From positions 1 through 64,000 of the forward strand of contig NIVC01000275.1 in assembly GCA_002269645.1 (NCBI GenBank): a stretch of 64,000 nt of DNA. The letters are read 5' to 3'. Under the pieces are notes generated by a model. It was not told where the DNA came from. It worked only from the letters and a program-made list of their open reading frames with translations, and did not search any database. Made by a program: the position numbers and the translations under genes. Origin of the DNA: Macrostomum lignano. Taxonomy: Eukaryota. Below are positions 13,702-64,000 of the stretch, piece by piece (position 1 is the stretch's first letter; every line of letters begins with the position of its first letter).

Positions 13702-16700
13702 ATGGGGAACTGCGCGTCGGCCTCTGCCGAGGATATTGAGGATTCTGTGGAGCTGAGGGTGAAGAAGCTGCTGACACCCGGCGGCAAGAGGGGCAAGCGG
13801 AAAAGGTGAGCGCGGGCTCGGGAGTAGCCAGGATTGTGGGCGCCTGCAGCTGTGGGTTGGAGGATGGAAGCAATGGGATAAAGGATGCAAGCAATGGGAT
13901 AAAGGGTGGAAGCAGTGGGTTGGAGGGTGGAAGCAGTGGATTGGAGGGTGGAAGCAATAGGATAAAGGATGGAAGCAGTAGGATAAAGGATGGAAGCAAT
14001 GAGATAAAGGATGGAAGCAGTAGGATAAAGGATGGAAGCAGTAGGATAAAGGATGGAAGCAGTAGGATAAAGGATGGAAGCAGTAGGATAAAGGATGGAA
14101 GCAGTAGGATAAAGGATGGAAGCAGTAGGATAAAGGATGGAAGCAGTAGGATAAAGGATGGAAGCAGTAGGATAAAGGATGGAAGCAGTAGGATAAAGGA
14201 TGGAAGCAGTAGGATAAAGGATGGAAGCAGTAGGATAAAGGATGGAAGCAGTAGGATAAAGGATGGAAGCAGTGGGTTGGAGGCTGGATTAAGCAGTAAG
14301 GAGGAAGTGACGTCCATGAGTAATAAAAATGAGCAAAAATAATCAGACAGTCTTCCAGTCACTCCAGATCAAATTCGTAATGGCTCAAACATGCTCGTAC
14401 AACTCCTAACCCTTAGCCATAGCCCTTAACCCTAACCCTAAGAAGCAGAAATCTCAAGACCTGCTTGCGCTCGCCAGAAGGAATAGGGATGCAATTAAAT
14501 GCGAGCCTCTCTGATGCTTGGAGAAAGAAAAAAGGAATGACTTGTTCGTCTACCGCTAAGCACCGGGGAAGCTGCTTCTGGCAATTAAATTGAGAACACA
14601 ATTAAATTTCTGCTTCAGGAAGGAAATTAGCTGCGATAAGGAAGAAATTTTTTGGCGAATAAAAATATCTGGGGTTTAAACTTGCTCTCGCGTACATGTA
14701 TAGGCTGCAAGCTGCGGGAGAAGGGGGACGCATGGGGGTGGAAATCCTCTTAACTTTGCTAGATCTTGCTCATCCCCACTAGACCTCCCTTTCGGATCCC
14801 ACTAGATCTCCCTCTCAGATCCCACTAAACCTCCATCTCAGATCCCACTAGATCCCCTCTCAGATCCCTCTATATCCCCCTCTCAGATCCCACTAGATCC
14901 CCCTCTCAGATCCCTCTATATCCCCTCTCAGATCCCACTAGATCTCCATCTCAGATCCCCACCAGATCTCCCTTTCAACTCTCCATTAGATCCCGAACTC
15001 TCTTGAAACCCCTCTATAACTCCCCACCCGTCGCGCCTCCGCCAGCCGCACCTCCATCCAGCTCAGCGGATTCGCTGACCACGCCAGACGGCTGCTGCAG
15101 ACGAAGGAGGGAGAGGAGGAGCTGGAAAAGCAGCTGGAGCGGCTGAACCTCATCGGCTCGAACTGCGAGCGCCTCATCTTCAGTGTAGAATGCGGCCAGA
15201 GCCTGCGCAACACCCTGAAGAACCGCTACACCAACGTGCTGCCCTACGACTCGAACCGGGTCAAACTGTCCCTGCCGAAACCCTCGGCCGACATGCCAGA
15301 TTTCGACGAGGATTCTGAGGAAAATCTCGATGAGGCGGACTCCGACGAAGGCGGCGGCTGCGAGGACCCGCTGCTGCGGCTGACCAGAGCCCCGTCCGAC
15401 TACGTCAACGCTAGCCCTCTTCGAGTGTCCAATCGCCGGTACATCGCCTGCCAAGGACCTCTGCAGGAGACGCTCGGCCAACATTGGCAGATGATCTGGG
15501 AGTCCGGGGTTCGCCTAGTTGCCATGGTAACGGACTGCGTTGAACAAGGCCGGAGCGCCTGCGCCAAATACTGGCCGGACGAGACTGGGACCAGCGTCTG
15601 CTACGGCCAGTACACAGTTGCTATGGAAACCGAGGAGACGCTAGACGACGGAAACCTGATCCGCCGTGAGCTGACAGTGTCCGTGACCGGCGACTCCAGC
15701 GAGACCCGCCGGCTTCGCCACCTGCAGTATTTGGGCCTGCCGCTGTCGGCGGACTGGTCCGGCCTAGACCCTGCCGGCTTCTGCCGCTTTGCCGCTGAGG
15801 TAGGCGCCACCGCCAGGCCGGACTGGCCGACCGTCGTCCACTGCGACAGCGGCGTCGGCCGGACCGGCGTCCTGCTCTGCCTGCTGTCCTTCAGCATTGA
15901 CGGAGTGCGCGCCAGCCAGCAAGTGGACGTGCCGGCCGCCGTTGTCGGGCTGAGGCTGAGCCGGCCGGGCATGGTGCACAGCAGAGTACGTAGCCTGGGC
16001 CATAGACAGCTGGCCTTGGCCATAGACAGCTAGCCTTGGCCATAGATAGCTGGCCTTGGCCATAGACAGCTAGCCTTGGCCATAGACAACTGGCCTTGAC
16101 CATAGACAGCTAGCCTTGGCCATAGACAACTGGCCTTGGTCATAGACAACTAGCCTTGGTCATAGACAACTGGCCTTGGTCAAAGACAACTGGCCTTGGC
16201 CATAGACAGCTGGCCTTGACCATAGACAACTAGCCTTGGTCATAGACAGCTGGCCTTGACCATAGACAGCTAGCCTTGGCCATAGACAACTGGCCTTGGT
16301 CATAGACAACTAGCCTTGGTCATAGACAACTGGCCTTGGTCAAAGACAACTAGCCTTGGTCATAGACAACTAGCCTTGGTCATAGACAACTAGCCTTGGT
16401 CATAGACAACTGGCCTTGACCATAGACAGCTAGCCTTGGCCATAGACAACTGGCCTTGGTCAAAGACAACTAGCCTTGGTCATAGACAACTGGCCTTGGC
16501 CATAGTCTACGCAATATTGATTAAATTTGCTCTTTAAAACCTTAACAACAGTTTCAGCCTCTCGCTTTAAAAATCCTGCAAATTTGAACTTGTAAATTCG
16601 TTTGGTTAGGAACATAGGCCATTTTATCGGACTCATACTGCATTGTTTCATACATGAGGCGGCATGTAACACCACTGGGAATCGGGAAGCGGAGACCCCA

Positions 16701-18984: not shown

Positions 18985-20210
18985 TGGTAACTTGGTTGAG
19001 TTCCAGGGATACTAGCATGGGTTCCATAGTGACTTGATTGGGTTTCATAAAGACACTGGATTGGGTTCCATAAGGACACTTGATTGGGTTCCATAACGAT
19101 ACTTGATTGGGTTCCATAAAGACACTGGATTGGGTTCCATAAAGACACTTGATTGGTTCCATAAGGACACTTGATTGGGTTCCATAAAGATACTTGATTG
19201 GGTTCCATAAAGATACTTGATTGGGTTCCATAAAGACACTTGATTGGGTTCCATAACGATACTTGATTGGGTTCCATAAGGACACTTGATTGGGTTCCAT
19301 AAAGATACTTGATTGGGTTCCATAAAGATACTTGATTGGGTTCCATAAAGACACTTGATTGGTTCCATAAGGACACTTGATTGGGTTCCATAAGGACACT
19401 TGATTGGGTTCCATAACGATACTTGATTGGGTTCCATAAAGACACTGGATTGGGTTCCATAAAGACACTTGATTGGTTCCATAAGGACACTTGATTGGGT
19501 TCCATAAGGACACTTGATTGGGTTCCATAAAGATACTTGATTGGGTTCCATAAAGACACTTGATTGGGTTCCATAAGGACACTTGATTGGGTTCCATAAG
19601 GACACTTGATTGGGTTCCATAAGGACACTTGATTGGGTTCCAACAGGACGCTTGATTGGGTTCCATAAGACACTGGATTGGGTTCCATAAAGACACTTGA
19701 TTGGGTTCCATAAGGACACTTGATTGGGTTCCATAAGGACGCTTGATTGGGTTCCATAAGACACTGGATTGGGTTCCATAAAGACACTGGATTGGGTTCC
19801 ATAGTCACTTTCTTGGGTTCCATAGTGACCTGATTGGGTTCCATAGTGACGTGATTGGGTTCCATAGTGACCTGATTGGGTTCCATAGTGACCTGATTGG
19901 GTTCCATAAGGACACTTGCTTGGGTTCCATAGTGACCTGATTGGGTTCCATAGTGACGTGATTGGGTTCCATAGTGACGTGATTGGGTTCCATAGTGACC
20001 TGATTGGGTTCCATAGTGACCTGATTGGGTTCCATAGTGACCTGATTGGGTTCCATAAGGACACTTGCTTGGGTTCCATAGTGACGTGATTGGGTTCCAT
20101 AGTGACCTGATTGGGTTCCATAAGGACACTTGCTTGGGTTCCATAGTGACGTGATTGGGTTCCATAGTGACCTGATTGGGTTCCATAGTGACGTGATTCG
20201 GTTCCAGGGA
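18985..20210. repeat. Tandem repeat with 23-bp unit (ttgattgggttccataaggacac) switching to a 21-bp variant (atagtgacctgattgggttcc) at ~19800
   Basis: Directly visible. Confidence 0.95.
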
Positions 20211-20252
20211 TGCTAGATTTATTTAAGAATCCTCTGCATCAAAGGACCAGCA

Positions 20253-20804
20253 TCAACCGTTTGACCACTGCCGCTGCTGTTGCTGCTGCTGCTGCTGTTG
20301 CTGCTCCCGGATTAGCGGGATGCAGAAAGTCCTGGGCGGCCGGACCAGCCGAGGGTGGCTGTTGCCGCAGCTCCCAGCGCTGTTGAGTCTCCCATTGGGC
20401 TCTTCCGCTGCCCGCTGGATGTCGGCCTCCCGCTGGGAGCTCGTCTCGCTGCTGCTGCCGTCCGGGCTCGCCCGATTCGACACCGACGTTGGCAGAGTCG
20501 CTGCGGTTGCCATGACAACGATTGCCGGAGTTAGTAGGTCGGGTGGCTGCGGCCGCTGCTGTGGAGGCTGAGCTGGGCAAGAAGACTCGGCCAGGCCGTC
20601 CCGCTCCCAGGCCTCGTACTGCGCCCGGCTTTGGCACCGGGTCAGCTGCCGAATCCTCTGCCTGATGCAGCACGGATTGGCAAAGGCGTCGTGCAGCTGG
20701 GCGCTGCCGGAGACCCGGCGCTCCAGCACCAGCAGCGCCTCCATGGGGCTAAGGACTCCGGCTGGCTGCATGCCAATTAACGAATTAACGAGTGCCAGAG
20801 GCGC
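20253..20804 (-). CDS. Terminal coding exon of uncertain ownership (172 aa from ATG 20771, ending in polyQ)
   Basis: GC-rich ORF. Acceptor TTTTAG|GCG lies 33 nt upstream of the ATG in an open frame. May be a further exon of the E2F-like gene or a separate gene. Confidence 0.5.
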   Translation of the reverse strand, partial: APLALVNSLIGMQPAGVLSPMEALLVLERRVSGSAQLHDAFANPCCIRQRIRQLTRCQSRAQYEAWERDGLAESSCPAQPPQQRPQPPDLLTPAIVVMATAATLPTSVSNRASPDGSSSETSSQREADIQRAAEEPNGRLNSAGSCGNSHPRLVRPPRTFCIPLIREQQQQQQQQQQRQWSNG

Positions 20805-21699
20805 CTAAAAGCAACTGGAGAAACTCGTCTCTCGCCCCAAGCCTGAGCAGCTTCTATATGCTCGCTGCTTGGCCCTGTACACCTGTGTCTCTCTATCCAT
20901 TTTATTCCCTTATCGCTCGATTATCCCTATTTAGCTCTTGTCCAATCATCGGTAGAGTGTTGGCGAGACACGCGCTCTGTCCGTCCCCACGCGCATCCCA
21001 AACTCCAGCTTTCTTTTTATTTTCTAGCTCCTACCAACCCCCGGCTGTTCCACCCAGCAAAGCAGAGGCAGCTGCAGAAACTTCTCTCACTGCCCCCCCC
21101 CAGTCCCTCACTTTCACTTTTGCATATCAGCAGCTCAGCGGGTTGCGGGCGGTGCCGCAATAAGACAATATTTTGATAACCCGCATGCTGGCCTGTAATT
21201 GTTGAGGACCCCCCCCCGGAACTGTCAATCTGCTGAAATTACAAGGAGCCCCTGCCGATTTAATAGTTAGGACTCTCTCGCGCAGGTTAATTAAATGGTT
21301 CAACTGCGAGGCGCTGGGGATATTAAAGGGTACATTGCTAATGGCTTACAAGCTCTCCAATACTGTCCTTGGCAGCTCGCAGCTGTCAATCAAGCCAGCA
21401 GGTGTTGCATTCTCTATTCAGGAGCTTCAGAGAATTGTTGCTTTTTTCATTACAAATCCCCAAATGTCAATGCAGATTCTAAGTACCTAAGTAGAAAAAC
21501 TATTGGCATTTCAGACACTTCAGGCCTTTTGAGTTTGGGATTTGCGGGACTCTTAAAGGGCTCAGGATTCAGTGCCAGGACCCTGTGAGTGTTGTTGAGC
21601 ATGTACGGCTGGTTTTGAATCTCGATAATTCCTATCAGCGATGCAAATCAAGGACATGCTCCCATGCCAGTTCGTGATTAGGGATTAGGAAATGGTCTT

Positions 21700-22030
21700 T
21701 TGGAATCGGGAAATAGACATTGGGGATCGGGAAATGGACATTGCGAATCGGGAAATGGACATTGGGGATCGGGGAATGGACATTGGGGATCGGGAAATGG
21801 ACATTGCGAATCGGGAAATGGACATTGGGGATCGGGAAATGGACATTGGGGATCGGGAAATGGACATTGGGAATTGGGAAATGGCCTTTGGGAATCGGGA
21901 AATGAACATTGGGAATCGGGAAATAGACATTGAGAATCGGGAAATGGACATTGGGGATCGGGAAATGGACATTGGGAATTGGGAAATGGCCTTTGGGAAT
22001 CGGGAAATGGACATTGGGAATTGGGAAATG
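21700..22030. repeat. Tandem repeat, 18-bp unit (ggaaatggacattggggatc-like)
   Basis: Directly visible. Confidence 0.9.
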
Positions 22031-22399
22031 GCTTTTAAAGTAATCACAGAGTTAGGAAGGGGAACTTATTTCACAGAAAGAGACGAGTAAGAATTGAAAG
22101 ACAAAAACTAAAAAAATTTCTACAAAAGCGCCAGCCAGTGCAAAAGAGGATGCAGCAATATTTATTGAACATAAACAATATGTAAAAAAGTTTCCACAAT
22201 GCAATGCAATCATGTATTGTACTCTAGCGTGATGGTATAAAATATTTTAGCGAATAAAAAGCAAAGAAATTCCCCAAACTGCAGGAAACAAATTGTGGAA
22301 ATCTCAATGCTAAGATGCTTTGCTCTGCGATAAAGCAGTTTACAGGAAAGCACTGCGCGACCTGACCTGGCGTTGCTGAGGATCCACCGGGCTGACACC

Positions 22400-23105
22400 G
22401 CAGCTGTCTGACTCTCAACTACTCACCCATGAGTGCTCCCTGACTCTCGCCCACCCCAAACGCTCTCTGACTCTCACCCACGAGCCATGGTGACTCTCAC
22501 CCACCCCCCCAAACGCTCTCTGACTCTCCCCACCACAAACGCTCTCTGACTCTCACCCACTTTAAACACTCTCTGACTCTCCCCCACCCCAAAAACTCTC
22601 TGACTCTCCCCACCCCAAACACTCTCTGACTCTCACCCACCCCAAACACTCTCTGACTCTCCCCCACCCCAACCACTCTCTGACTCTCACCCACCCCAAC
22701 CACTCTCTGACTCTCACCCACCCCAAACACTCTCTGACTCTCCCCACCCCAAACACTCTGACTCTCACCCTTCCCAACCACTCTCTGACTCTCCCCCACC
22801 CCAAACACTCTCTGACTCTCACCCACCCCAACCACTCTCTGACTCTCCCCCACCCCAACCACTCTCTGACTCTCACCCACCCCAACCACTCTGACTCTCC
22901 CCCACCCCAAACACTCTCTGACTCTCCCCACCCCAAACACTCTCTGACTCTCCCCACCCCAAACACTCTCTGACTCTCCCCACCCCAACCACTCTCTGAC
23001 TCTCACCCACCCCAACCACTCTCTGACTCTCACCCACCCCAAACACTCTCTGACTCTCACCCACCCCAACCACTCTTTGACTCTCACCCACCCAGACGCT
23101 CTGAC
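22400..23105. repeat. C-rich tandem repeat, ~26-bp unit (actctctgactctccccaccccaaac)
   Basis: Directly visible. Confidence 0.9.
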
Positions 23106-23204
23106 TATATTGACCCATTGACAAATACTCGTGACGCAGAAAAAATTGCACGATTAGAAAGAAAGAAAGAATGAACTGACAAAAAGGGAATTTCCTGAAA
23201 AACA

Positions 23205-26200
23205 TCAAGCATTCTGATCAACTCTATTAGATCTAGCCAGGGTAGTTACACGTAGCGGAGCCGAAGTCACGAATCTCTGAGAGTTCAATGAGGTCATGGC
23301 TGCTGACGATTGCGCAGGAGGAGGCGGTCTCTGAGGCGGGAGAAGCGTCGAGCGGACGTAATGAACCCGCGAGCCGCCGCCGCCGCCGCCGCTCTGGCCA
23401 GTCAGCACCACCCGAGTGCACGGGCCGACCTTCTCGTGCTGAGTGGCCGCTAGCAGCTCGCTGAATGTGGCGGCGCTGACCGCGGCCCGGCTGTCCAGCA
23501 CGATTCGCTTGGCTGGCGGAGGCTGCGGCGCCGGCGGATCAGCAGAGGAGGCGGGCGCGGAGGCGCCTGGCGGCGATCGCTTCGGCGAGATTCGCAGCGG
23601 CCCGGCAGCCCGGCGAGACTCCCTGGCAGCGGCGGCGGCCGCGGCGTTCTTGGCCTCGATGGCGTGCCGACAGGGCGCCGGCGGTGGCAGCGTCAGGTTG
23701 AGCCGGACGGGAATGCGGGGCAGCTTCGGCACCAGCGGGCGAAGGTCGACGCTGACTGGCTGCTGGTGCTGCTGCTGGGACTGATGATGAAGCTTCAGCT
23801 GATCGATGGAGGCCAATGTGACTGCCGGCGGCCTGGACGGAGCGGACGAGGAGCTGGAGGATGGACAGGAGGTCTGCTGCTGCTGCTGCTGATGCTGGTG
23901 GTGATGGTGCTGTTGAGACCGGACAGCTTTGATGATGTCGGCAAGGCCGCTTGGAGACGAGAGCACCTGAGGGGCAGGGCGTATAAATTATAACATAGAT
24001 GCATTTTAAATAAGTTACTATGGTAACCAAGCGGCTGCTGAGGCGCAACTTTGGCTACTAGGGTGCCATTTTGGCTACTGAGATGCCATTTTGGTTACTA
24101 GGGTGCCATTTTGGCTACTAGGACGCCATTTTGGTTACTAGGGTGCCATTTTGGTTACTAGGGTGCCATTTTGGCTACTAGGACGCCATTTTGGCTACTG
24201 GAGCGCCATTTTGGTTACTAGGGTGCCATTTTAGCTACTGGAGCGCCATTTTGGTTACTAGGGTGCCATTTTGGCTACTAGGACGCCATTTTGGTTACTA
24301 GGGCGCCATTTTGGCTACTGGAGCGCCATTTTGGCTACTGAGATGCCATTTTAGCTACTGAGATGCCATTTTGGTTACTAGGGTGCCATTTTGGCTACTG
24401 GAGCGCCATTTTGGTTACTAGGGTGCCATTTTGGTTACTAGGGTGCCATTTTGGCTACTAGGACGCCATTTTGGCTACTGGAGCGCCATTTTGGTTACTA
24501 GGGTGCCATTTTAGCTACTGGAGCGCCATTTTGGTTACTAGGGTGCCATTTTGGCTACTAGGACGCCATTTTGGTTACTAGGGCGCCATTTTGGCTACTG
24601 GAGCGCCATTTTGGCTACTGAGATGCCATTTTGGCTACTGAGATGCCATTTTGGTTACTAGGGTGCCATTTTGGCTACTGGAGCGCCATTTTGGTTACTA
24701 GGGTGCCATTTTGGTTACTAGGGTGCCATTTTGGCTACTAGGACGCCATTTTGGCTACTGGAGCGCCATTTTGGTTACTAGGGTGCCATTTTAGCTACTG
24801 GAGCGCCATTTTGGTTACTAGGGTGCCATTTTGGCTACTATGACGCCATTTTGGTTACTAGGGCGCCATTTTGGCTACTGGAGCGCCATTTTGGATACTG
24901 AGATGCCATTTTGGCTACTGAGATGCCATTTAGGTTACTAGGGTGCCATTTTGGCTACTGGAGCGCCATTTTGGTTACTAGGGTGCCATTTTGGCTACTG
25001 GAGCGACATTTTGGTTACTAGGGTGCCATTTTGGCTACTGGGACGCCAGTTTGGTTACTAGGGTGCCATTTTGACTACTGGGACACAATTTTGGCTATTG
25101 GGATGCCAGGTTTGTCCTGTACAACAGCAGAGATATGTAGATCTGCTACAAAATCAAGCTACTAGAAGCTGCTACTCACCACAGCAACTCTCTCCGGACC
25201 AAGAGGCGGCTGGTTGTGAGCAGCCAGTCCCTGGTTTGAGTGCTGCAGTGAAACTGGCGTTGCCGTAGCAGCCGTTGTCGTGACTGGCTTGGGCGGGCTT
25301 GACGCCGCCGAGGCCGCCAGCGTGTGCGCCGGCGAAGGATGATGATGAGGCGGCAGCTGAGGCGGCGGCGCGGAGGCCAGGCTGCCAGCGCCAGACAGCT
25401 GAGTGGCGAAGTCCAGCGGGTCTCTGCGGGATGCGGCAGGGGATCTGGGAGATTAGTGAAGCCAGGCTGGGGATCTGGGAGGTTAGTGGGGATCGGGGAG
25501 ATTAGTGAAGCCAGTCTGGGGATCTGGGAGATTAGTGAAGCCAGTCTGGGGACCTGGGAGATTAGTGAAGCCAGGCTGGGGATCTGTGAGATTAGTGAAG
25601 CCAGTCTGGGGATCTGGGAGATTAGTGAAGCCAGGCTGGGGATCTGTGAGATTAGTGAAGCCAGTCTGGGGATCTGGGAGATTAGTGAAGCCAGTCTGGG
25701 GATCTGGGAGATTAGTGAAGCCAGGCTGGGGATCTGTGAGATTAGTGAAGCCAGTCTGGGGATCTGGGAGATTAGTGAAGCCAGGCTGGGGATCTGTGAG
25801 ATTAGTGAAGCCAGTCTGGGGATCTGGGAGATTAGTGAAGCCAGTCTGGGGATCTGGGAGATTAGTGAAGCCAGGCTGGGGATCTGTGAGATTAGTGAAG
25901 CCAGTCTGGGGATCTGGGAGATTAGTGAAGCCAGTCTGGGGATCTGGGAGATTAGTGAAGCCAGGCTGGGGATCTGTGAGATTAGTGAAGCCAGTCTGGG
26001 GATCTGGGAGATTAGTGAAGCCAGTTTGGGGATCTGTGAGATTAGTGAAGCCAGTCTGGGGATCTGGGAGATTAGTGAAGCCAGTCTGGAAATTTGGGAG
26101 ATTAGTGAAGCCAGGCTGGGAATCTGGGAGCACAGTCGGCCTAAAATAAAGACGCTGAATGTCACAATGCCAACCTGGCCGCCGCAGACTGCAGGCTGCT

Positions 26201-28545
26201 ATCTGAGCAGCAGCCCAGCATCTCGGCCAGGGCAGCGTCCAGTCCGCCCGACGATCCCGCAGAGCCGGCGGCGCTGGCTGCGGAGGCGGCGGTGGACGAC
26301 ACGACAGCCGCGGCGGAGGTGCAGCGCCACTGGAGGTCCCGGGCATGAGCAGCTTCCTAGGGGAGGCGGAGAACAGATCCTCCAGATCGATGGGACAGTC
26401 GGACAGGCAGCTGACGTCCTGAGCGTCGGCTTCAGTGAATCCCGGCGGCGGGTTGAGTCGGCGAACAGGTCGGACACGGCCACCACGCTGGAGGACGGAG
26501 GCGTTGACAGCGGCTGGTGCTGCTGCTGCTGCTGCTGATGCGGCGGCGGCGATTGTGCAGCAGAGGCAGCCGGGTTAGATGGCTCTTTCTGTGGCGAGTA
26601 CTGAGTCGAGGCGGACACCTTGGCGACGCCGGAGACGGAGCTAACCAGCTGCAGCACCGTGCCCAGGCTCAGGCGGACCTTGTTGGGTCCCGTGATGGTG
26701 CCCTCCACCTGGAGGCGACGGGTAATTATCATAGTGCACCGCGGATACTGTTATATCCCATCTCAAACATCTTCCACTATCCAAACTCATCCCACATCTC
26801 CCATTATCTCACATCTCCCATTATCCCAACCCATCCCACATCTCCCATTATCTCAACCCATCCCCCATCTCCCATTATCCCAACCCATTCCACATCTGTC
26901 CATTATCCCAATTCCCAGCCCATCTCACATTTCCCATTATCCCAGCCCATCTCACATCTCCCATTATCCCAACCCATCTAACCTCAATATACGGCAGCTG
27001 GGAGTGGCCGGCGGCAGCGCCATCAATGGAAGCTGCGCCAGTTGCAGAGGCCGCTACGGCAGTGTCGGCATCGCTGGCTGCCACCTGCAGCCGGACGGCC
27101 TCTTCCAGTTCAGGATGCAGCTGCAGGCCGCTGCCTCCCCCACCGCCGCCGCCAGGTCGAGCGGGCAGCAGCCGGGCCAGGCCGAAGCCAACAAGAACGC
27201 CAGCTACGTCGCCTATGCGACGCGCCTAAAAAGTAGTAGTAAATAAATAATTAAAGTAATTGCAATTTGCCTACTGATAGTAGAGCAGCTAAAGTATTAG
27301 CATTATAACTACGCTCAATAAATAAATCTTGAAATCTACCTAATAATAGTAGAACAGTTGAAATATTAGCATTAAACCTACGCTAAATAAAAAAACATTG
27401 CAATCTGCCTACTAATAGTAGAACAGCTGAAATATTAGCATTAAACTTACGCAAAATAAATAAAATTTGCATTTTGCCTACTTATAGTAGAACAGCTGAA
27501 ATATTAGCATTGAACCTACGCTAAATAAATAAAGTTTGCATTTCGGCTACTGATAAGTAGAACAGCTGAAATGTTAATATTAATTAAAACTACGCTAAAT
27601 CGATAAAATTTGCACAGGCGCCAGCATACACACGCTCACACAGTGTGTACAGCTGTCCTGAATCGCACCACAGCCTCACAAATGAACGCGGCCACGCACG
27701 GAATCGAACCAGGGACCGTAGCGCTGCTCTGCTCCCCCAGACCCCAAACCCACCTGGCTAGGCTTGGCCAGTCCAGCTCGGACAGCGAAATCGGCCAGCA
27801 AGTCTAACGACAGCTGGTCATCAGGCCGGGCCAGCAGCAGCAGCTTCAGCACCGCCTGGCACAGTCTGTACAGCGCGGTCTCGTGATCGGCGCTGGAGGC
27901 CGGGCCAATACACGGCACCAAGTCGTCCTGGTCGGCCTGGGGATTGAACGTCACGGACGAGGAGCTGATTGGAGAATGAGCCGGCGGTTGCTGCTGCAAC
28001 TGGCGGAGAGCGGCAGCGTAGCCGTCCCGGATGGCGCAGTGGCGCAGGGCGCACAGGCAGGCAGTCAGGTAGCGCCTGCCGTACCACAGGTACTGGCCGC
28101 AGGAGTCATATTTCCTGGCCACCCCCGTGCCGGACAGCACGGAGCAGGCGTCCGCCAGCTGGCGACGGCTCAGACGGCGGGACTCGGCCAGTCCGGGCAC
28201 GGACAGCAGGCGGCTGTCCCGGACACTGCTCCGGTAGGGCAGCGCGTCGCATAATGCTCTGGTCACCTTCATCAGTGGATTGCTCAACGGAGTCCGTTCG
28301 CGACAGACAGTCGGCTGAGTCTGGCCAACAACAGCCGCCGTGTTGACTTGGCCGCAAAGCAGGACATCGTTTGAGCCGGATGATGAAGCCGACTGAAGCT
28401 GGACAGACTGGGAATGCGGCGGTTGAGCTGTCTGGTCACCGTGATGGTGGGCCAGATCGGCGGGGTGCGGGTTGGAGTGCAGCTGCTGGGGCAGGAACCA
28501 GTCGAATCCGGGCAGGGAGCAGTCCGACACGGCCGGGTAGTCCAT
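23205..28545 (-). CDS. Divergent atypical E2F (E2F7/8-like, two winged-helix DNA-binding domains); exons 28545-27754, 27225-26983, 26747-26175, 25423-25180, 23966-23205
   Basis: DBD1 LSVPGLAESRRLSRRQLADACSVLSGTGVARKYDSCGQYLWYGRRYL aligns by eye with E2F7/8 ISLDEVA..ERRRIYDIVNVLESL..V...NQYxWHGR. DBD2 LYRLCQAVLKLLL..LSLDLLA..ARRIGDVAGVL aligns with SLRIMSQKFVMLFL..VRRLYDIANVL. GT-AG phases 0, 0, 2, 0 are consistent if two single-base losses in exon 3 (~26451, ~26340) are errors. Confidence 0.7.
24050..25110. repeat. Intronic 20-bp tandem repeat (gccattttggctactagggt) with 280-bp higher-order structure
   Basis: Diagnostic variants recur at 280-bp spacing: ttagctactg at 24231/24511/24791 and gggcgccatt at 24301/24581/24861. 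Confidence 0.95.
25440..26130. repeat. Intronic 30-bp tandem repeat (attagtgaagccagtctggggatctgggag)
   Basis: About 23 highly homogeneous units. Confidence 0.95.
26770..26980. repeat. Intronic ~22-bp repeat (cccacatctcccattatccca)
   Basis: Between E2F-like exons 2 and 3. Confidence 0.85.
27270..27600. repeat. Degenerate ~75-bp AT-rich tandem repeat (cctactaatagtagaacagctgaaatattagcattaaacctacgct...)
   Basis: 4-5 copies in the first coding intron of the E2F-like gene. Confidence 0.75.
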
Positions 28546-28844
28546 GGCTGGGCTCCGGGCGAAGCTGCTGGATTAGAGGCGTTCAAGTAGGTGGCTGTGG
28601 GGTTTGCAGTTAATTGACTGCTACTCAAGTCTAAGCACTTCAATAGCTGAGTATATCTGTTTCTAGACAAGATTTGCATTTTCATCTCAAATACTGCACT
28701 TGTTTACTACAAATTCAAGCATATCCCATAGGCATAGAAGTATGAAAGAATTATAGCATATCTATTTTTAAGCACATCACTGTTTTAAGCACGTACTTGT
28801 CCAATTCTTATTTTTCTAATTTTCTAAGAGTTTCCTATTGAATA

Positions 28845-29515
28845 GTGCTCTCCCTGCCAACACTCCAGCTCTCCCTGCCAACACTCCAGCTCTCCCTGCC
28901 AACACTCCAGCTCTCCCTGCCAACACTCCAGCTCTTCCAATCACTCCAGCTCTTCCTGCTATCACTCCAGCTCTCCCTGCCAACACTCCAGCTCTTCCTG
29001 CTATCACTCCAGCTCTCCCTGCCATCACTCCAGCTCTTCCTGCTATCACTCCAGCTCTTCCTGCTATCACTCCAGCTCTCCCTGCCATCACTCCAGCTCT
29101 CCCTCCCATCACTCCAGCTCTCCCTGCTATCATTCCAGCTCTCCCTGCCATCACTCCAGCTCTCCCTGCTATCACTCCAGCTCTCCCTGCTATCACTCCA
29201 GCTCTCCCTGCCATCACTCCAGCTCTCCCTGCTATCACTCCAGCTCTCCCTGCTATCATTCCAGCTCTCCCTGCTATCACTCCAGCTCTCCCTGCTATCA
29301 CTCCAGCTCTCCCTGCCATCACTCCAGCTCTCCCTGCTATCATTCCAGCTCTCCCTGCTATCATTCCAGCTCTCCCTGCTATGATTCCAGCTCTCCCTGC
29401 CATCACTCCAGCTCTCCCTGCTATCATTCCAGCTCTCCCTGCCATCACTCCAGCTCTCCCTGCTATCATTCCAGCTCTCCCTGCCATCACTCCAGCTCTC
29501 CCTGCCATCACTCCA
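28845..29515. repeat. 21-bp tandem repeat (actccagctctccctgctatc)
   Basis: About 32 units, ~300 bp upstream of the E2F-like ATG. Confidence 0.95.
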
Positions 29516-29611
29516 GTTCAATTTTGCATATAGGCCATGCACTGCTTCTTCCAGGTTGACTGCATGCTTGGGCGCAACCTTGGGATTCACTCGGCCGCCT
29601 CTACCGGCAAC

Positions 29612-41177: not shown

Positions 41178-41951
41178 ATGCAGCTCTATTGCAATTTCAT
41201 ATTGCTGCTGTGGACTGCCGCCCCCTTGCTTGAGGCAAACAGTTTCTCAGTCGAGCAGTTCTATTCAACTACAGGGCTGGACTGCGTGAGCCCCAGCTTT
41301 ACTAGGACTTTGGAAACATGCAAATTGTTCCACTGCAGTGCCCATTGCGCCAAGATGACCAACTGCCAAGCTTTTACAATGGAGACGAATGGCCACTGCC
41401 TGTGCAAACTGTTCCTGTTCGACGCGTGCAGCCACCGAGTGCAGTCAGTGCCGAACTGCACCAACCAGGTCACCGTGTACGTCAGGTCTCCGCCTGGCGT
41501 GCCTCTGGGCCGCCTGTGCCCGCCCGGCTACCAGTACACTCGATTCGGTACTTCGTACAAGTTTGTCATGGAGGAGCAAGTCAACTGGATCACCGCCAAT
41601 CAAAGATGCAGCGCAGAGGCTGGGCTGTCCAAGTTCGCTGACGCTATCGATGCTGACGAGGCGAGCTACCTGCTGCAGCTGCAGCGCCAGATCGTGCCAG
41701 GCGCTTCGGTGGCCGACTTTTTTCTCGGCGGACGGCAATCAGCCGAGTTCACACCGCGATCTGACGGCTGGTTCTGGTCTGCCTGCAACCGCTCGGTGGA
41801 CTCTGGGATCTGGCACCCTGGCCAACCCGACGGTAAATTCCCTGTAGCCAGCTGCACTGCTCTCTACAGACACTTTCCTTCTGGACTCGATGATTATTTC
41901 TGCAATAAGAACACCTCCTACATCTGCGAGTGCCAGTCTGTGTTTAATTAA
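41178..41951 (+). CDS. Secreted PAN/apple + C-type lectin domain protein, intronless, 257 aa
   Basis: Hydrophobic N-terminal signal-like segment; PAN-like CSAHCAKMTNCQAF; CTLD motifs NWITANQRC, FFLGG, W-x-W, WHPGQPDG, SCTAL, DDYFC and YICEC. Confidence 0.85.
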   Translation: MQLYCNFILLLWTAAPLLEANSFSVEQFYSTTGLDCVSPSFTRTLETCKLFHCSAHCAKMTNCQAFTMETNGHCLCKLFLFDACSHRVQSVPNCTNQVTVYVRSPPGVPLGRLCPPGYQYTRFGTSYKFVMEEQVNWITANQRCSAEAGLSKFADAIDADEASYLLQLQRQIVPGASVADFFLGGRQSAEFTPRSDGWFWSACNRSVDSGIWHPGQPDGKFPVASCTALYRHFPSGLDDYFCNKNTSYICECQSVFN

Positions 41952-55729: not shown

Positions 55730-57099
55730 CTAGTCCTTCGGCTGGCTGCCCGAGGTTATAGGTTCGAGTCCGGCCAGCTCCAGCTGCAGTTCCCGCTCCC
55801 AATCATTGTAAACAATTTCAACGACATCATCACCGACCTCGGCCTCAAGAGCCTCTCTGGACGGCACTCGCTCAAAGCTATCGCTGCTGCAGGCTGACGA
55901 GCATTCAGAGGCCTCGGCAGGCGAATGCGCTCTCGCGTCCCTAGCAACAGTTGCTAGGGCTGGAGTGGATACTGAGAGCTGCGCGGAGCGGCGGATCACG
56001 CTAACCTGAGGTTGGGAAATGTCAACATTGTATCCAAATAAGGCTGGCCTAGCAGGGGACTCTGGGGGCTAGCAGGGGAAACTGGGGGCTAGCAAGGGAC
56101 TCTGGGGGCTAGCAAGGGACTCTGGGGGCTAGCAGGGGACACTGGGGGCTAGCAGGGGACACTGGGGGCTAGCAGGGGACACTGGGGGCTAGCAGGGGAC
56201 ACTATGGTGACTATCAGGGGACACTGGGGGCTAGCAGGGGACACTGGGGGCTAGCAGGGGACACTGGGGGCTAGCAGGGGACACTATGGTGACTATCAGG
56301 GGACACTGGGGGCTAGCAGGGGACACTGGGGGCTAGCAGGGGACACTGGGGGCTAGCAGGGGACACTGGGGGCTAGCAGGGGACACTGGGGGCTAGCAGG
56401 GGACACTATGGTGACTATCAGGGGACACTGGGGGCTAGCAGGGGACACTGGGGGCTAGCAGGGGACACTATGGTGACTATCAGGGGACACTGGGGGCTAG
56501 CAGGGGACACTGGGGGCTAGCAGGGGACACTGGGGGCTAGCAGGGCACATTGGGGGCTAGCAGGAGACATGGGTAGTGGGTAGCTACAGCATCACTTAAC
56601 AGGCATGAAAGAGGCACAGCCAGCCAGCAGCCAAGACTCAGCTCCATACCCTATAGAAATAATTCCTCCAGAACTGCTCCTCGGCCAGCCGCCTCGGCAC
56701 CAGCCTGAATCGCATCTGCCTGAGCGCCGGGTCGGCCTCCAGCGCGGCCATAGCCGATAGCAGTACCGGCTCCAAGCAGAACTCGAAGCCGCAGCTGGCA
56801 GGCGGTGGGCGGAGAAAATTGCGAGGATCCTCAGCCAGCGATAAAATCTGATTGCGCGGACCCGGCTCCAGGCCAGACCAGGGCGGCTCTGCAGCGGCCG
56901 AGGAGGCCAGAGAAGCTTGCTGTTGCTGCTGCTGCCCAGAGTCGGTGACGGCCATGGCAGCAGCGGCAGCGGCAGCCGCAGTAGAAGCCACAGCGTTGGT
57001 GGCCCGCCGGCCCAGACAGTAGAGTGTGGCGCCCCAGCTCTTGGCAGCACTGCCTAGACTGGCTTGGCGTGGACTATGCGCTGATGCGTCAGCTAGCAT
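55730..57099 (-). CDS. SYAP1: Synapse-associated protein 1 (BSD domain), copy 1; exons ~57099-56650 and 56005-55730
   Basis: EPPW..QILSLAEDPRNFLRPPP..MRFRLVPRRLAEEQFWRNYFYR|VSVIRRSAQL and C-terminal DWERELQLEL. Phase-0 GT-AG intron. Start codon uncertain; an upstream exon is possible. Confidence 0.85.
56040..56570. repeat. Intronic 20-bp repeat (ctagcaggggacactggggg)
   Basis: SYAP1 copy 1 intron. Confidence 0.95.
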
Positions 57100-59277
57100 G
57101 GCCAGAGTTGGCGTCTGGAAGAGCTCTGACTGAGTGATCAACAATTGAAAGTAGAGTTCCACTGTAACCAAAAATTTCCCATAATTTATCCATAGCTAAA
57201 TAATTATTTATTGTACAAAAATGGCTGGGACTGCATTTATCTTAACTTGAGTCACCAACCACCCCAACCACACAATTCACATGTGGCATTGAAAATCTGT
57301 TGCCTAAGTCCTCAACTTTTAGGACAAGAGAAGAGTTCATCTCATAAAAAGCTTTGAAACTTGCAAAGCATTTAGGTAAAGATGATATTTACTTGTCTAT
57401 TACACCTAAGATTTAGGATGCAATTGACCTTAACCTCTTTAAGGCAGTGAAGATATTTGTCACTTTGTTTCAGTTGGATAGGTCAAATTTAGGTCAATAG
57501 ACACTTTCTTTCTATTCAACCCTATATCGCTATTCTAGTTATAAAGACTATAGAGTGAAAGATTTTATACATACATGTATGTCAATGTCCTCTATTAGTT
57601 TAGAAGTGTTGGTGACAGACAAAAAAACACTTTTCTCTCTATGAAATAATCTGCAAAATTCCTAAGTTTTCTAAATGTCATGGGTTTCAGAAGACCTTAT
57701 CTAAATAAACTTTATTCATTGCAAGATTCAGATATGGTCTTGATTCCAAACTGTTAAGTCTAAACAAGTCTAACTTGGACTCCAAGGATAAGGCCAATTT
57801 CGAAGAAGAAAAAATTAAATTATAGAACAATAAGAAGCCTAGAATATTATATTTGAATATGATAACAATCAACTACATCCATGTATTAAATTTCTAGGAA
57901 CAAATGGTTGCAATTCATCCTGGAATCTACCAGATCAAGCTAATAAAAATGCATCTTTTATTGAGAAGTTCTTGACAGGCAACAATTTTTAGCGTATTTT
58001 GGACTACAAAAATGCGAGAGCTTGGAAAGAGCTTATGAATGTTTAAGAGCCAGATATGTTACCCAAGATAGTTTAATAGAAGGACTGTAGCCCAAATTAA
58101 ATTTGAAAATCTGTGGGTTTTTGTGCCTGCACAATATATAAGGCTAAATAAGAAGCCTAAATTGAATATTTACTAGTCAATTTTTTTCAATCACTTCTCA
58201 TATTTAAGCCAACCTTCCTGCCTTTTTTATAATTAGTTTAAAAATATCATAGGCTTTATATGATTCTATAATTGCAATGCCAAGAACCTAGATAATGCAA
58301 TTTATAAAAATTAACCTTTTTGCTTGTGCTTGAGGCTTAAAACCTTTGTCAAACCAACTACATACTTTGCTATCAAGTATCAACATTGGCAAAAGACTAA
58401 TACTATATAAAGGCAGTCAGATTTTAAGTAATATATCTTAAAATGGAGTAGATATTAAGGTATTAAGCTTTACTGCTTTTGTAAATCCAATAGTGGCTAT
58501 CTATAGAACCTAGCTATGTATTTTGTATATTAGTTGTCAAAAGAAAACTTAGAAGATTGGTATCAACCTCAATTGCAATGAGGTTATTATTGAGCTATCT
58601 CAAAACTTGCTCAACTTAGGCTATTATACCCTTTTAAATAGCTAGTTTGGCTCAAATTGCTTAGCCACTAGAGTAGGCCCTAGCATTTTGATAATAGCAT
58701 GACATATAAAGAAAGCATTAACAAGAATATATACTCAATAGCATAAAAGGTTGTCACTTTACCTTTGTATGTCTAATTATTTCTAGCTTAGCATTGACTT
58801 TGAATGATAAAACTTGTACCACATGACAGAGTTGGGCTAAATAAGAAAAAATTGAAGAGTAGATAGCAAAGATTAGATATATGGATTAAAGATTCTTTCT
58901 AGGCCTAGTTTTTATTTTTTAATCATTAATATAAAAAAAGAATGACTAGGTGTTAGACTCTAGTTGAAGGATATTAGGGCAAAGGATAGCAACTTTTTAA
59001 TATTATTGAGTATATTCACTTGGCTACATTCTCAGTTAAGAAGAGCCCCACCTGCCTAGGCAGTGAATGAATAGTTGCTAAGTAATATATTGCTAGTTTT
59101 TTTTCAACAAATATTATTATTAGCTTATAAAGGCGTAAAGATAAAGGAAATTGCTGAGAAAAGCAAAGATCATTCTAGCTAAGTTGATAATAAAGACTTG
59201 ATCATTTAAAGTAGGCTTAGCACTCATCAAATAGTCTCCAAGATATAAAAGCATTTTGATAGTAAGGCAAAGGCAAA

Positions 59278-62863: not shown

Positions 62864-64000
62864 CTAGTCCTTCGGCTGGCTGCCCAAGGTTATAGGTTCG
62901 AGTCCGGCCAGCTCCAGCTGCAGTTCCCGCTCCCAATCATTGTAAACAATTTCAACGACATCATCACCGACCTCGGCCTCAAGAGCCTCTCTGGACGGCA
63001 CTCGCTCAAAGCTATCGCTGCTGCAGGCTGACGAGCATTCAGAGGCCTCGGCAGGCGAATGCGCTCTCGCTTCCCTAGCAACAGTTGCTAGGGCTGGAGT
63101 GGATACTGAGAGCTGCGCGGAGCGGCGGATCACGCTAACCTGAGGTTGGGAAATGTTAACATTGTTTCCAAATACGGCTGGCCTAGCAGGGGACTCTGGG
63201 GAGCTAGCAGGGGACACTGGGGGCTAGCAGGGGACACTGGGGGGCTAGCAGGGGACTCTGGGGGCTAGCAGGGGACTCTGGGGGCTAGCAGGGGACTCTG
63301 GGGGCTAGCAGGGGACTCTGGGGGGCTAGCAGGAGACTCTGGGGGCTAGCAGGGGACTCTGGGGGCTAGCAGGGGACTCTGGGGGCTAGCAGGGAACACT
63401 GGGGGGCTAGCAGGGGACTCTTGGGGCTAGCAGGGGACACTGGGGGGCTAGCAGGGGACACTGGGGGCTAGCAGGGACACTGGGGGGCTAGCAGGGGACA
63501 CTATGGCGGCTAGCAGGGGACACTTTGGCGACTAGCAGGGGACTCTGGGGGCTAGCAGGGCACATTGGGGGCTAGCAGGAGACATGGGTAGTGGGTAGCT
63601 ACAGCATCACTTAACAGGCATGAAAGAGGCACAGCCAGCCAGCAGCCAAGACTCAGCTCCATACCCTATAGAAATAATTCCTCCAGAACTGCTCCTCGGC
63701 CAGCCGCCTCGGCACCAGCCTGAATCGCATCTGCCTGAGCGCCGGGTCGGCCTCCAGCGCGGCCATAGCCGATGGCAGTACCGGCTCCAAGCAGAACTCG
63801 AAGCCGCAGCTGGCAGGCGGTGGGCGGAGAAAATTGCGAGGATCCTCAGCCAGCGATAAAATCTGATTGCGCGGACCCGGCTCCAGGCCAGACCAGGGCG
63901 GCTCTGCAGCGGCCGAGGAGGCCAGAGAAGCTTGCTGTTGCTGCTGCTGCTGCCCAGAGTCGGTGACGGCCATGGCAGCAGCGGCAGCGGCAGCCGCAGT
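62864..64000 (-). CDS. SYAP1: SYAP1 copy 2 (5' end outside the window); exons >64000-63665 and 63139-62864
   Basis: Near-identical to copy 1 with the same intron position. Confidence 0.85.
63180..63585. repeat. Intronic 20-21-bp repeat (ctagcaggggactctgggggg)
   Basis: SYAP1 copy 2 intron; the variant mix differs from copy 1. Confidence 0.95.

Follow-up and report, generated by a model that had tools for sequence, protein, structure and literature searches.

A gene of Macrostomum lignano related to the atypical E2Fs, with altered residues in both recognition helices

Can an atypical E2F protein be maintained when its two recognition helices no longer carry the residues that its relatives share? 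This question is raised by a gene of the flatworm Macrostomum lignano on the minus strand of contig NIVC01000275.1 (assembly GCA_002269645.1). The window, that is the whole stretch of DNA that was analysed, covers positions 1 to 64,000 of this contig. An atypical E2F consists of one polypeptide with two E2F/DP-type winged helices that jointly mimic an E2F-DP heterodimer. The family comprises E2F7 and E2F8 in animals and DEL/E2Fe-f in plants. Atypical E2Fs keep S-phase genes in check, and in both animals and plants they govern endocycles and polyploidisation. In every sampled member from plants to vertebrates, both recognition helices are essentially invariant. An earlier reading of the locus (here called the sequence-only reading) had described an E2F7/8-like protein that has lost the RRxYD signature in both of its DNA-binding domains (DBDs). 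The comparisons presented below make us nearly certain that the product of the locus is homologous to the atypical E2Fs and that its recognition helices are altered.

The members of the family were collected with a query matching the human E2F8 DBD (PDB 4YO2, chain A), and an hhalign profile was built from 14 diverse E2F7/8/DEL proteins, plant DEL included. When residues 81-316 of the M. lignano product were aligned to this profile, a match with a probability of 94% and an E-value of 1.3e-7 was obtained over 175 columns, with DBD1, the linker and DBD2 all in register. The query was also shuffled 60 times, which gave a maximal score of 22.8 compared to 58.3 for the real sequence. MAFFT reached the same register independently, and the identity to the canonical members was about 20%. 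When canonical E2F7/8 proteins were searched against the window with tblastn, the sole match was found at 28185-27781, with a best E-value of 1.5e-8.

The two domains were then analysed with separate hidden Markov models (HMMs), for which the columns of each domain were taken from 85 family members. The cognate domains scored 16.3 bits for DBD1 and 11.2 bits for DBD2, whereas the maxima of 2000 shuffles were 5.7 and 4.8 bits, such that none of the 2000 reached the real score. The crossed comparisons between the DBD1 and DBD2 profiles were not significant, and hence the two domains correspond one-to-one with the domains of E2F7/8. A typical E2F (E2F1-6) or DP protein has one DBD, to which a coiled-coil/marked-box dimerisation domain is added. 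The M. lignano product does not have this layout, since it contains a pair of DBDs, each with a match to its cognate E2F7/8 profile alone. A coiled-coil/marked-box (leucine-zipper) or pocket-protein-binding transactivation domain was not detected with Pfam in exons 1-5 and the candidate exons downstream, the 3' end of the gene being uncertain. A search with the Pfam model E2F_TDP (PF02319), suggested as a check by the sequence-only reading, succeeded in part: DBD2 (amino acids 222-280) was matched weakly, with 21.7 and 19.4 bits where the gathering score is 25.7, whereas nothing was found on DBD1, even when this domain was searched alone. When AlphaFold was supplied with a multiple sequence alignment of the family, it modelled two winged helices with a predicted local distance difference test score (pLDDT) of 84 and a predicted template modelling score (pTM) of 0.83, with the pLDDT of DBD1 above 90. 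A Foldseek search of the PDB with this model returned E2F8 (4YO2) as the only match below 1e-3, with a TM score of 0.74 on the target.

The stretch 28545-26983 comprises precisely exons 1 and 2 of the gene, which has canonical GT-AG introns. Exon 1 (27754-28545, 264 codons) starts with an ATG at 28545, ends at the donor CAG/GTGGGT and matches two public M. lignano models, P0001 and P0124, by about 99%. It encodes an N-terminal portion of 87 amino acids, followed by DBD1, the linker and the first half of DBD2. Intron 1 (27226-27753) is 528 bp long with 36% GC, is in phase 0 and consists mostly of a 69-bp tandem repeat (27244-27614). It splits DBD2 immediately ahead of its recognition helix. This helix is encoded by exon 2 (26983-27225, 81 codons, acceptor TTTTTAG/GCG, donor GAG/GTTAGA), together with the wing and a tail rich in alanine and glycine. 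Intron 2 (26709-26982), likewise GT-AG and in phase 0, is packed with repeats of 27, 44 and 62 bp. Exon 3 (26619-26708) adds 30 codons (VEGTITGPNK...VSGVAK) and uses the same junction as P0001 and P0124.

The gene extends downstream of 26983, although the exons past exon 3 are only tentative; this part is of low complexity and uncertain in frame. By comparison with the other models, exon 4 was provisionally placed at 26175-26418. Exon 5 is provisionally located at 25180-25423 (DPLDFATQ...PERVAV, donor GTG/GTGAGT), and possible further 3' exons lie within 20487-23816 (23816-23247 and 20804-20487), where they are joined to the gene by a third model, P0003. No domain match was observed in the low-complexity region of these 3' candidate exons (20487-23816, minus strand). 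Near position 26320 in exon 4, the window is 1 nucleotide shorter than the DNA behind P0001 and P0124 (GCA-CC compared to GCA-ACC), and as a result the frame is shifted downstream of ...LLMPGTSSGAA. The shorter form is also the one that P0003 implies. Either the assembly has an indel here, or the window copy carries a genuine frameshift. The segment 26425-26618, which is spliced out in P0001 and P0124, is open in frame and encodes poly-Q and Ser-Pro stretches. It is kept as coding in a fourth model, P0002, so that intron retention or an alternative isoform may be involved.

The recognition helices were compared in human E2F8 numbering, with the offset verified against the residue numbers in PMC4686757 and in a gap-free register anchored on the Asp and the subsequent Val-Leu. 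DBD1 (28036-28284, amino acids 88-170) was recognised as an E2F-like winged helix by hhalign, MAFFT, HMM, tblastn and AlphaFold. Its recognition helix RRQLADACSVL (28167-28135) aligns to RRRIYDIVNVL, such that R127 corresponds to R154, R128 to R155, Q129 to R156, L130 to I157, A131 to Y158, D132 to D159 and S135 to N162. The beta-hairpin of DBD1 reads QYLWYGR (28095-28075), where Y152, W154, G156 and R157 retain the equivalents of Y178, W180, G182 and R183. The first half of DBD2 (27754-27894, amino acids 218-264) contains the helices ALYRLCQAVLKLLLLA and LSLDLLADFAV, aligned to SLxxMSQKFVMLFLVS and VSLDxAAKIL, respectively. In the second half, the recognition helix RRIGDVAGVL (27222-27193) aligns to RRLYDIANVL, with R266 at the position of R313, R267 of R314, I268 of L315, G269 of Y316, D270 of D317 and G273 of N320. 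At the site of the conserved RGRKPAFKW hairpin, the DBD2 wing contains a run of seven glycines (27133-27153), which the AlphaFold model places as a loop between two strands.

Much of the sequence-only reading was borne out by these alignments. The three motif strings that it quoted are present on the minus strand, the splicing is clean, the turn in DBD1 is kept, and the tandem arrangement of two DBDs is real by hhalign, MAFFT, the domain HMMs and the shuffle controls. That the protein belongs with the atypical E2Fs is supported by both hhalign and MAFFT, and the Tyr and the downstream Asn are indeed replaced in both domains. The claim that RRxYD is lost in both domains is refined by the aligned register. 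The equivalent motifs are RQLAD in DBD1, which lacks the second Arg as well as the Tyr, and RRIGD in DBD2, which lacks the Tyr alone. Of the four arginines in the two motifs, three remain, as do both Asp residues.

These replacements are unusual for the family. Among the 85 sampled members from animals, plants and protists, which were the best matches to human E2F8, the residues R156, Y158, D159, R313, R314, Y316, D317 and N320 are invariant (85/85). N162 and the first motif Arg of DBD1 are conserved in at least 90%; the M. lignano protein has replaced the former and kept the latter. In mouse E2F7 numbering, the replaced positions are the invariant R186, Y188, Y337 and N341 and the nearly invariant N192. 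Also replaced are the N-terminal minor-groove arm (R113, K114 and S117), K175, N176, the basic start of DBD2 and the RGRKPAFKW wing. Over the strongly conserved columns, 28 of 73 are identical in the M. lignano protein. The net charge is +10 for DBD1 and +2 for DBD2, compared to +6 for DBD2 of E2F8. By these comparisons the product descends from the E2F7/E2F8/DEL proteins, yet it lacks two defining features of that family: it scores below the Pfam threshold and has an incomplete RRxYD in both domains.

What the changed residues mean for DNA binding can be judged from the known structure. In the E2F8-DNA complex, Arg313 and Arg314 contact bases, whereas Tyr316 contacts the backbone; Arg113, Lys114, Ser117 and Lys175 read narrowed minor grooves, and Arg154 and Arg172 touch the backbone (PMC4686757). 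The sequence-only reading had treated the lost Tyr as a base contact, which for the Tyr of DBD2 does not agree with this structure. The alleles of human E2F7 that are commonly used as DNA-binding-dead are R185A and R334A (PMC5951837). The equivalents of both residues, R128 and R266, are retained here. Since these arginines are kept and DBD1 is basic, a loss of DNA binding, one of the options put forward by the sequence-only reading, is not established. A weakened or re-specified binding is equally possible. The pattern is that many auxiliary contacts and some primary contacts are lost, and not that the DNA-reading arginines are lost wholesale. The classical E2F site is TTTSSCGC/TGGCGGGA, and TTTTGGCGGGAAA is the DNA sequence named for a comparison of binding with the human E2F8 DBD. 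No TTTSSCGC site was found near the gene, and the whole window contains 4 compared to about 6 expected.

The reading that we favour, though only tentatively, is that this is a maintained gene for a derived atypical E2F with weakened or re-specified DNA binding. The protein would fold as a tandem winged helix, as the fold-determining residues and the order DBD1-linker-DBD2 are retained. It would approach DNA through the retained arginines R127, R128, R266 and R267 and the very basic DBD1. The tyrosine backbone anchors, one base-contacting Arg, the minor-groove arm and the canonical DBD2 wing would no longer contribute. With fewer backbone and minor-groove anchors, the affinity for the classical site would probably be lower or the preference shifted. 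The outcome would be a weak or re-targeted E2F-type repressor, possibly competing with canonical E2F complexes.

Several observations point to a protein that is maintained. Exons 1-3 contain 375 codons without a stop, whereas the remaining five frames have 5-13 stops each. Composition-matched shuffles had a mean of 8.2 stops, and a fraction of 5e-5 was fully open; an analytic estimate gave 2.6e-4. As the identity to the relatives is only about 20% and the frame is still open, neutral drift is unlikely, since it would have closed the frame. An anciently dead pseudogene was rejected on the same 375-codon open frame. In the conserved hydrophobic columns, 31 of 38 positions stay hydrophobic, whereas 12 of 28 polar or charged columns keep their class (Fisher p = 0.0016). 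Because the alignment itself favours hydrophobic matches, this column test is supportive and not decisive. Taken together, the open frame and the retained core are arguments that the protein can still fold and that selection has kept it in existence.

A different consequence of the same replacements, suggested by the sequence-only reading, would be a decoy that does not bind DNA, in which the tandem winged helix acts through protein contacts, for example by dimerising with canonical E2F7/8 or another E2F/DP partner and titrating it, much as primate TFDP3 does with E2F1. This is what residues invariant from plants to vertebrates being replaced in the recognition helix and the wing would lead one to expect, as would the loss of the minor-groove arm and of K175, whose roles are described in PMC4686757, and the barely positive DBD2. 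In addition, part of the proposed alpha-1 dimer surface of E2F8 is kept (the equivalents of L121, C122 and R128), and a precedent exists in TFDP3, a lineage-restricted, DNA-binding-defective inhibitor of the E2F/DP superfamily (PMC8564135). However, the equivalents of E2F7 R185 and R334, R267 and both Asp residues are retained, DBD1 is very basic, and the Tyr of DBD2, one of the two that are lost, touches the backbone and not a base. For a decoy, M. lignano would also need a canonical E2F7/8 protein as the partner, and such a protein is so far hypothetical. We therefore regard a decoy as unlikely. More doubtful still is an atypical E2F that has given up the recognition of classical E2F sites and, in the proliferating neoblasts and germline, takes part in the E2F network as a partner that is dominant-negative or re-targeted.

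The database relatives of the product are M. lignano models only. P0001 is 99% identical to the product, P0002 75% overall and 91% over the matched stretch, and P0003 83%, whereas P0124 shares a 90% cluster with P0001. At least three copies or alleles hold the entire DBD frame, and the copies otherwise differ by four substitutions only (H35R, T140A, N201S and A254T). With so few amino acid differences, there is little power for an analysis of the ratio of nonsynonymous to synonymous substitution rates (dN/dS). In UniRef the models are named as SEC7-, protein-kinase- and kinesin-domain-containing proteins, names that are unrelated to the E2F-like content, and they are without domain annotation; the E2F ancestry of the gene thus appears to be unrecorded in the public models. 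P0124 fuses the gene to about 1200 residues from other minus-strand parts of the window (56005 to 34134, including repeat arrays). The first 91 residues of P0124 match both 55733-56005 and 62867-63139 at 98.9% each, about 7.1 kb apart, which indicates a duplicated segment within the window.

A copy or small family under relaxed constraint, left by the recent genome duplication of M. lignano, could have lost its motifs by decay. Such a history would account for family-invariant residues being gone in both domains, for the Gly7, poly-Q and Ala/Ser low-complexity runs and for the exon 4 discrepancy of 1 nucleotide with P0001 and P0124. It would also fit P0002 and P0003, which come from other assemblies or copies and are full of frame changes, the failure to detect anything beyond M. 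lignano, and the lack of a recorded Pfam domain in any model. On the other hand, a decaying duplicate would hardly keep 375 codons open, with all other frames closed, at about 20% identity to the family, and here the hydrophobic core positions are selectively retained, the splice sites are intact and the DBD frame is held in the copies described above. The frame hops of P0002 and P0003 are absent from the window and resemble the indel errors of early long-read assemblies. On balance, decay seems an improbable explanation.

The gene might also be the ordinary M. lignano E2F7/8 orthologue, functional on classical sites through compensating contacts, with its oddities caused by a long flatworm branch and a GC bias. 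Its coding GC content and GC content at third codon positions (GC3) equal those of a neighbouring bona fide protein-tyrosine-phosphatase (PTP) exon (GC 0.65, GC3 0.79), many of its substitutions are toward GC-rich codons (Y to A/G, N to S/G, K to R), and the key arginines are retained. However, under the same composition the PTP domain scores 4e-46 with Pfam, whereas the E2F-like protein stays below the E2F_TDP threshold. At the replaced positions, the 85 sampled plant, protist and animal proteins are invariant, and the DBD2 wing is restructured. An ordinary orthologue is therefore quite improbable. A chance resemblance of an open reading frame (ORF) unrelated to E2F is scarcely credible and was excluded: the Pfam scores are sub-threshold, an exhaustive phmmer search of the product returned no E2F among its matches, and phmmer against the PDB reached only E = 1.1 to E2F8, but the in-register alignment spans two domains and an intron, with an hhalign E-value of about 1e-7, far lower scores for the shuffles, the domain HMMs and the tblastn E-value of 1.5e-8.

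Several points weigh against the favoured reading of a maintained, derived atypical E2F. The whole case is built on one species and on sequence alone. Both domains miss the curated Pfam threshold. The agreement between AlphaFold and Foldseek, by which the family-alignment model comes closest to 4YO2, is partly circular, as the alignment consists of E2F7/8 proteins, and the single-sequence model was uninformative with a pLDDT of 40. With this caveat, the structural comparison with E2F8 that the sequence-only reading had suggested agrees with the homology. In the 85-sequence sample, divergent lineages are under-represented. The 1-nucleotide discrepancy in exon 4, if real, scrambles the C-terminal part of the window copy. 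The composition is extreme: the residues Gly, Ala, Arg and Pro (GARP) make up 0.38 of the protein and Phe, Tyr, Met, Ile, Asn and Lys (FYMINK) 0.09, compared to 0.15-0.33 and 0.20-0.39 in the family. A GC-driven amino acid bias and the low-complexity insertions likewise fit relaxed constraint. No orthologue outside M. lignano was found in a word-indexed search with the 430-residue product or with phmmer against 1.84 billion representatives. No transcript evidence was retrieved, and the supplementary tables of M. lignano neoblast and germline transcriptomes held nothing relevant. Further, a metagenome scan found no relative, and a literature search for atypical E2Fs (E2F7/8) in flatworms found no paper.

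Some further features of the window were noted. Every intron and flank of the gene has its own long minisatellite within 20000-29516. Apart from the repeats in intron 1 (69 bp, 5 copies) and in intron 2 (27, 44 and 62 bp, at 26767-26979), these are a 21-bp unit in 32 copies at 28847-29516, a 30-bp unit in 21 copies at 25487-26130, a 40-bp unit in 27 copies at 24033-25108, a 27-bp unit in 25 copies at 22436-23093 and a 21-bp unit in 16 copies at 21688-22031. Long spurious ORFs on both strands arise from these minisatellites. The exon-sized PTP ORF used above for the comparison of composition is located on the plus strand at 15236-16033 (Pfam Y_phosphatase) and contains the active-site loop VHCDSGVGRTG. 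On the minus strand, an ORF at 56638-57171 ends in a BSD domain (E = 5e-12). A cysteine-rich, secreted-looking ORF on the plus strand at 41178-41951 gave a sub-threshold match to a C-type lectin (E = 0.0085, 17.3 bits compared to a cut-off of 22.6).

If the gene is maintained as we suppose, a homologue changed in both helices would offer, as a natural experiment, a way to ask which contacts set the specificity for the E2F site. It would also bear on whether the tandem winged-helix scaffold can be turned to a different target or into an inhibitor. Should classical site recognition really have been abandoned, this would be the first such case among the tandem-DBD E2Fs. M. lignano is tractable for transgenesis, and its stem cells are the only dividing somatic cells, so that direct testing is possible.

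Among the known systems, E2F7 and E2F8 are compared best through the human E2F8-DNA structure (PDB 4YO2). As in these proteins, the M. lignano product carries both of its E2F/DP-type winged helices on one chain, and their order and spacing are the same. Another shared trait is that neither a coiled-coil/marked-box nor a pocket-binding domain was detected. It shares with E2F8 the equivalents of the core residues C122, V163-L164, Y178-x-W180-x-G182-R183, L266, Q271, L276, L287 and A291, and in the recognition helices R154, R155 and D159 of DBD1 and R313, R314 and D317 of DBD2. Unlike in E2F7 and E2F8, the N-terminal Arg-Lys arm, K175/N176 and the basic DBD2 start (RKDKS) are absent, and the DBD2 wing RGRKPAFKW is changed to ARPGGGGGGGSGLQL. 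Many animal E2F7/8 proteins have in addition an N-terminal EPWTPTANLK motif, which was not seen here. The plant DEL/E2Fe-f proteins have the same tandem-DBD architecture, but all sampled plant members keep RRRIYD and RRLYDIAN, and they are no nearer to the M. lignano protein than the animal ones (17-25% identity).

TFDP3 (DP-4), the primate-restricted DP paralogue, resembles the M. lignano protein as a lineage-restricted member of the E2F/DP superfamily and is the functional precedent for a decoy. Owing to a few substitutions in its DBD, the complexes that it forms bind little or no DNA, and TFDP3 acts as an inhibitor of E2F activity (PMC8564135). However, TFDP3 is of the DP type: it has one DBD, its heterodimerisation domain is intact and RRTYD is still present, whereas the M. 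lignano protein combines two DBDs in one chain, without a DP-style dimerisation domain.

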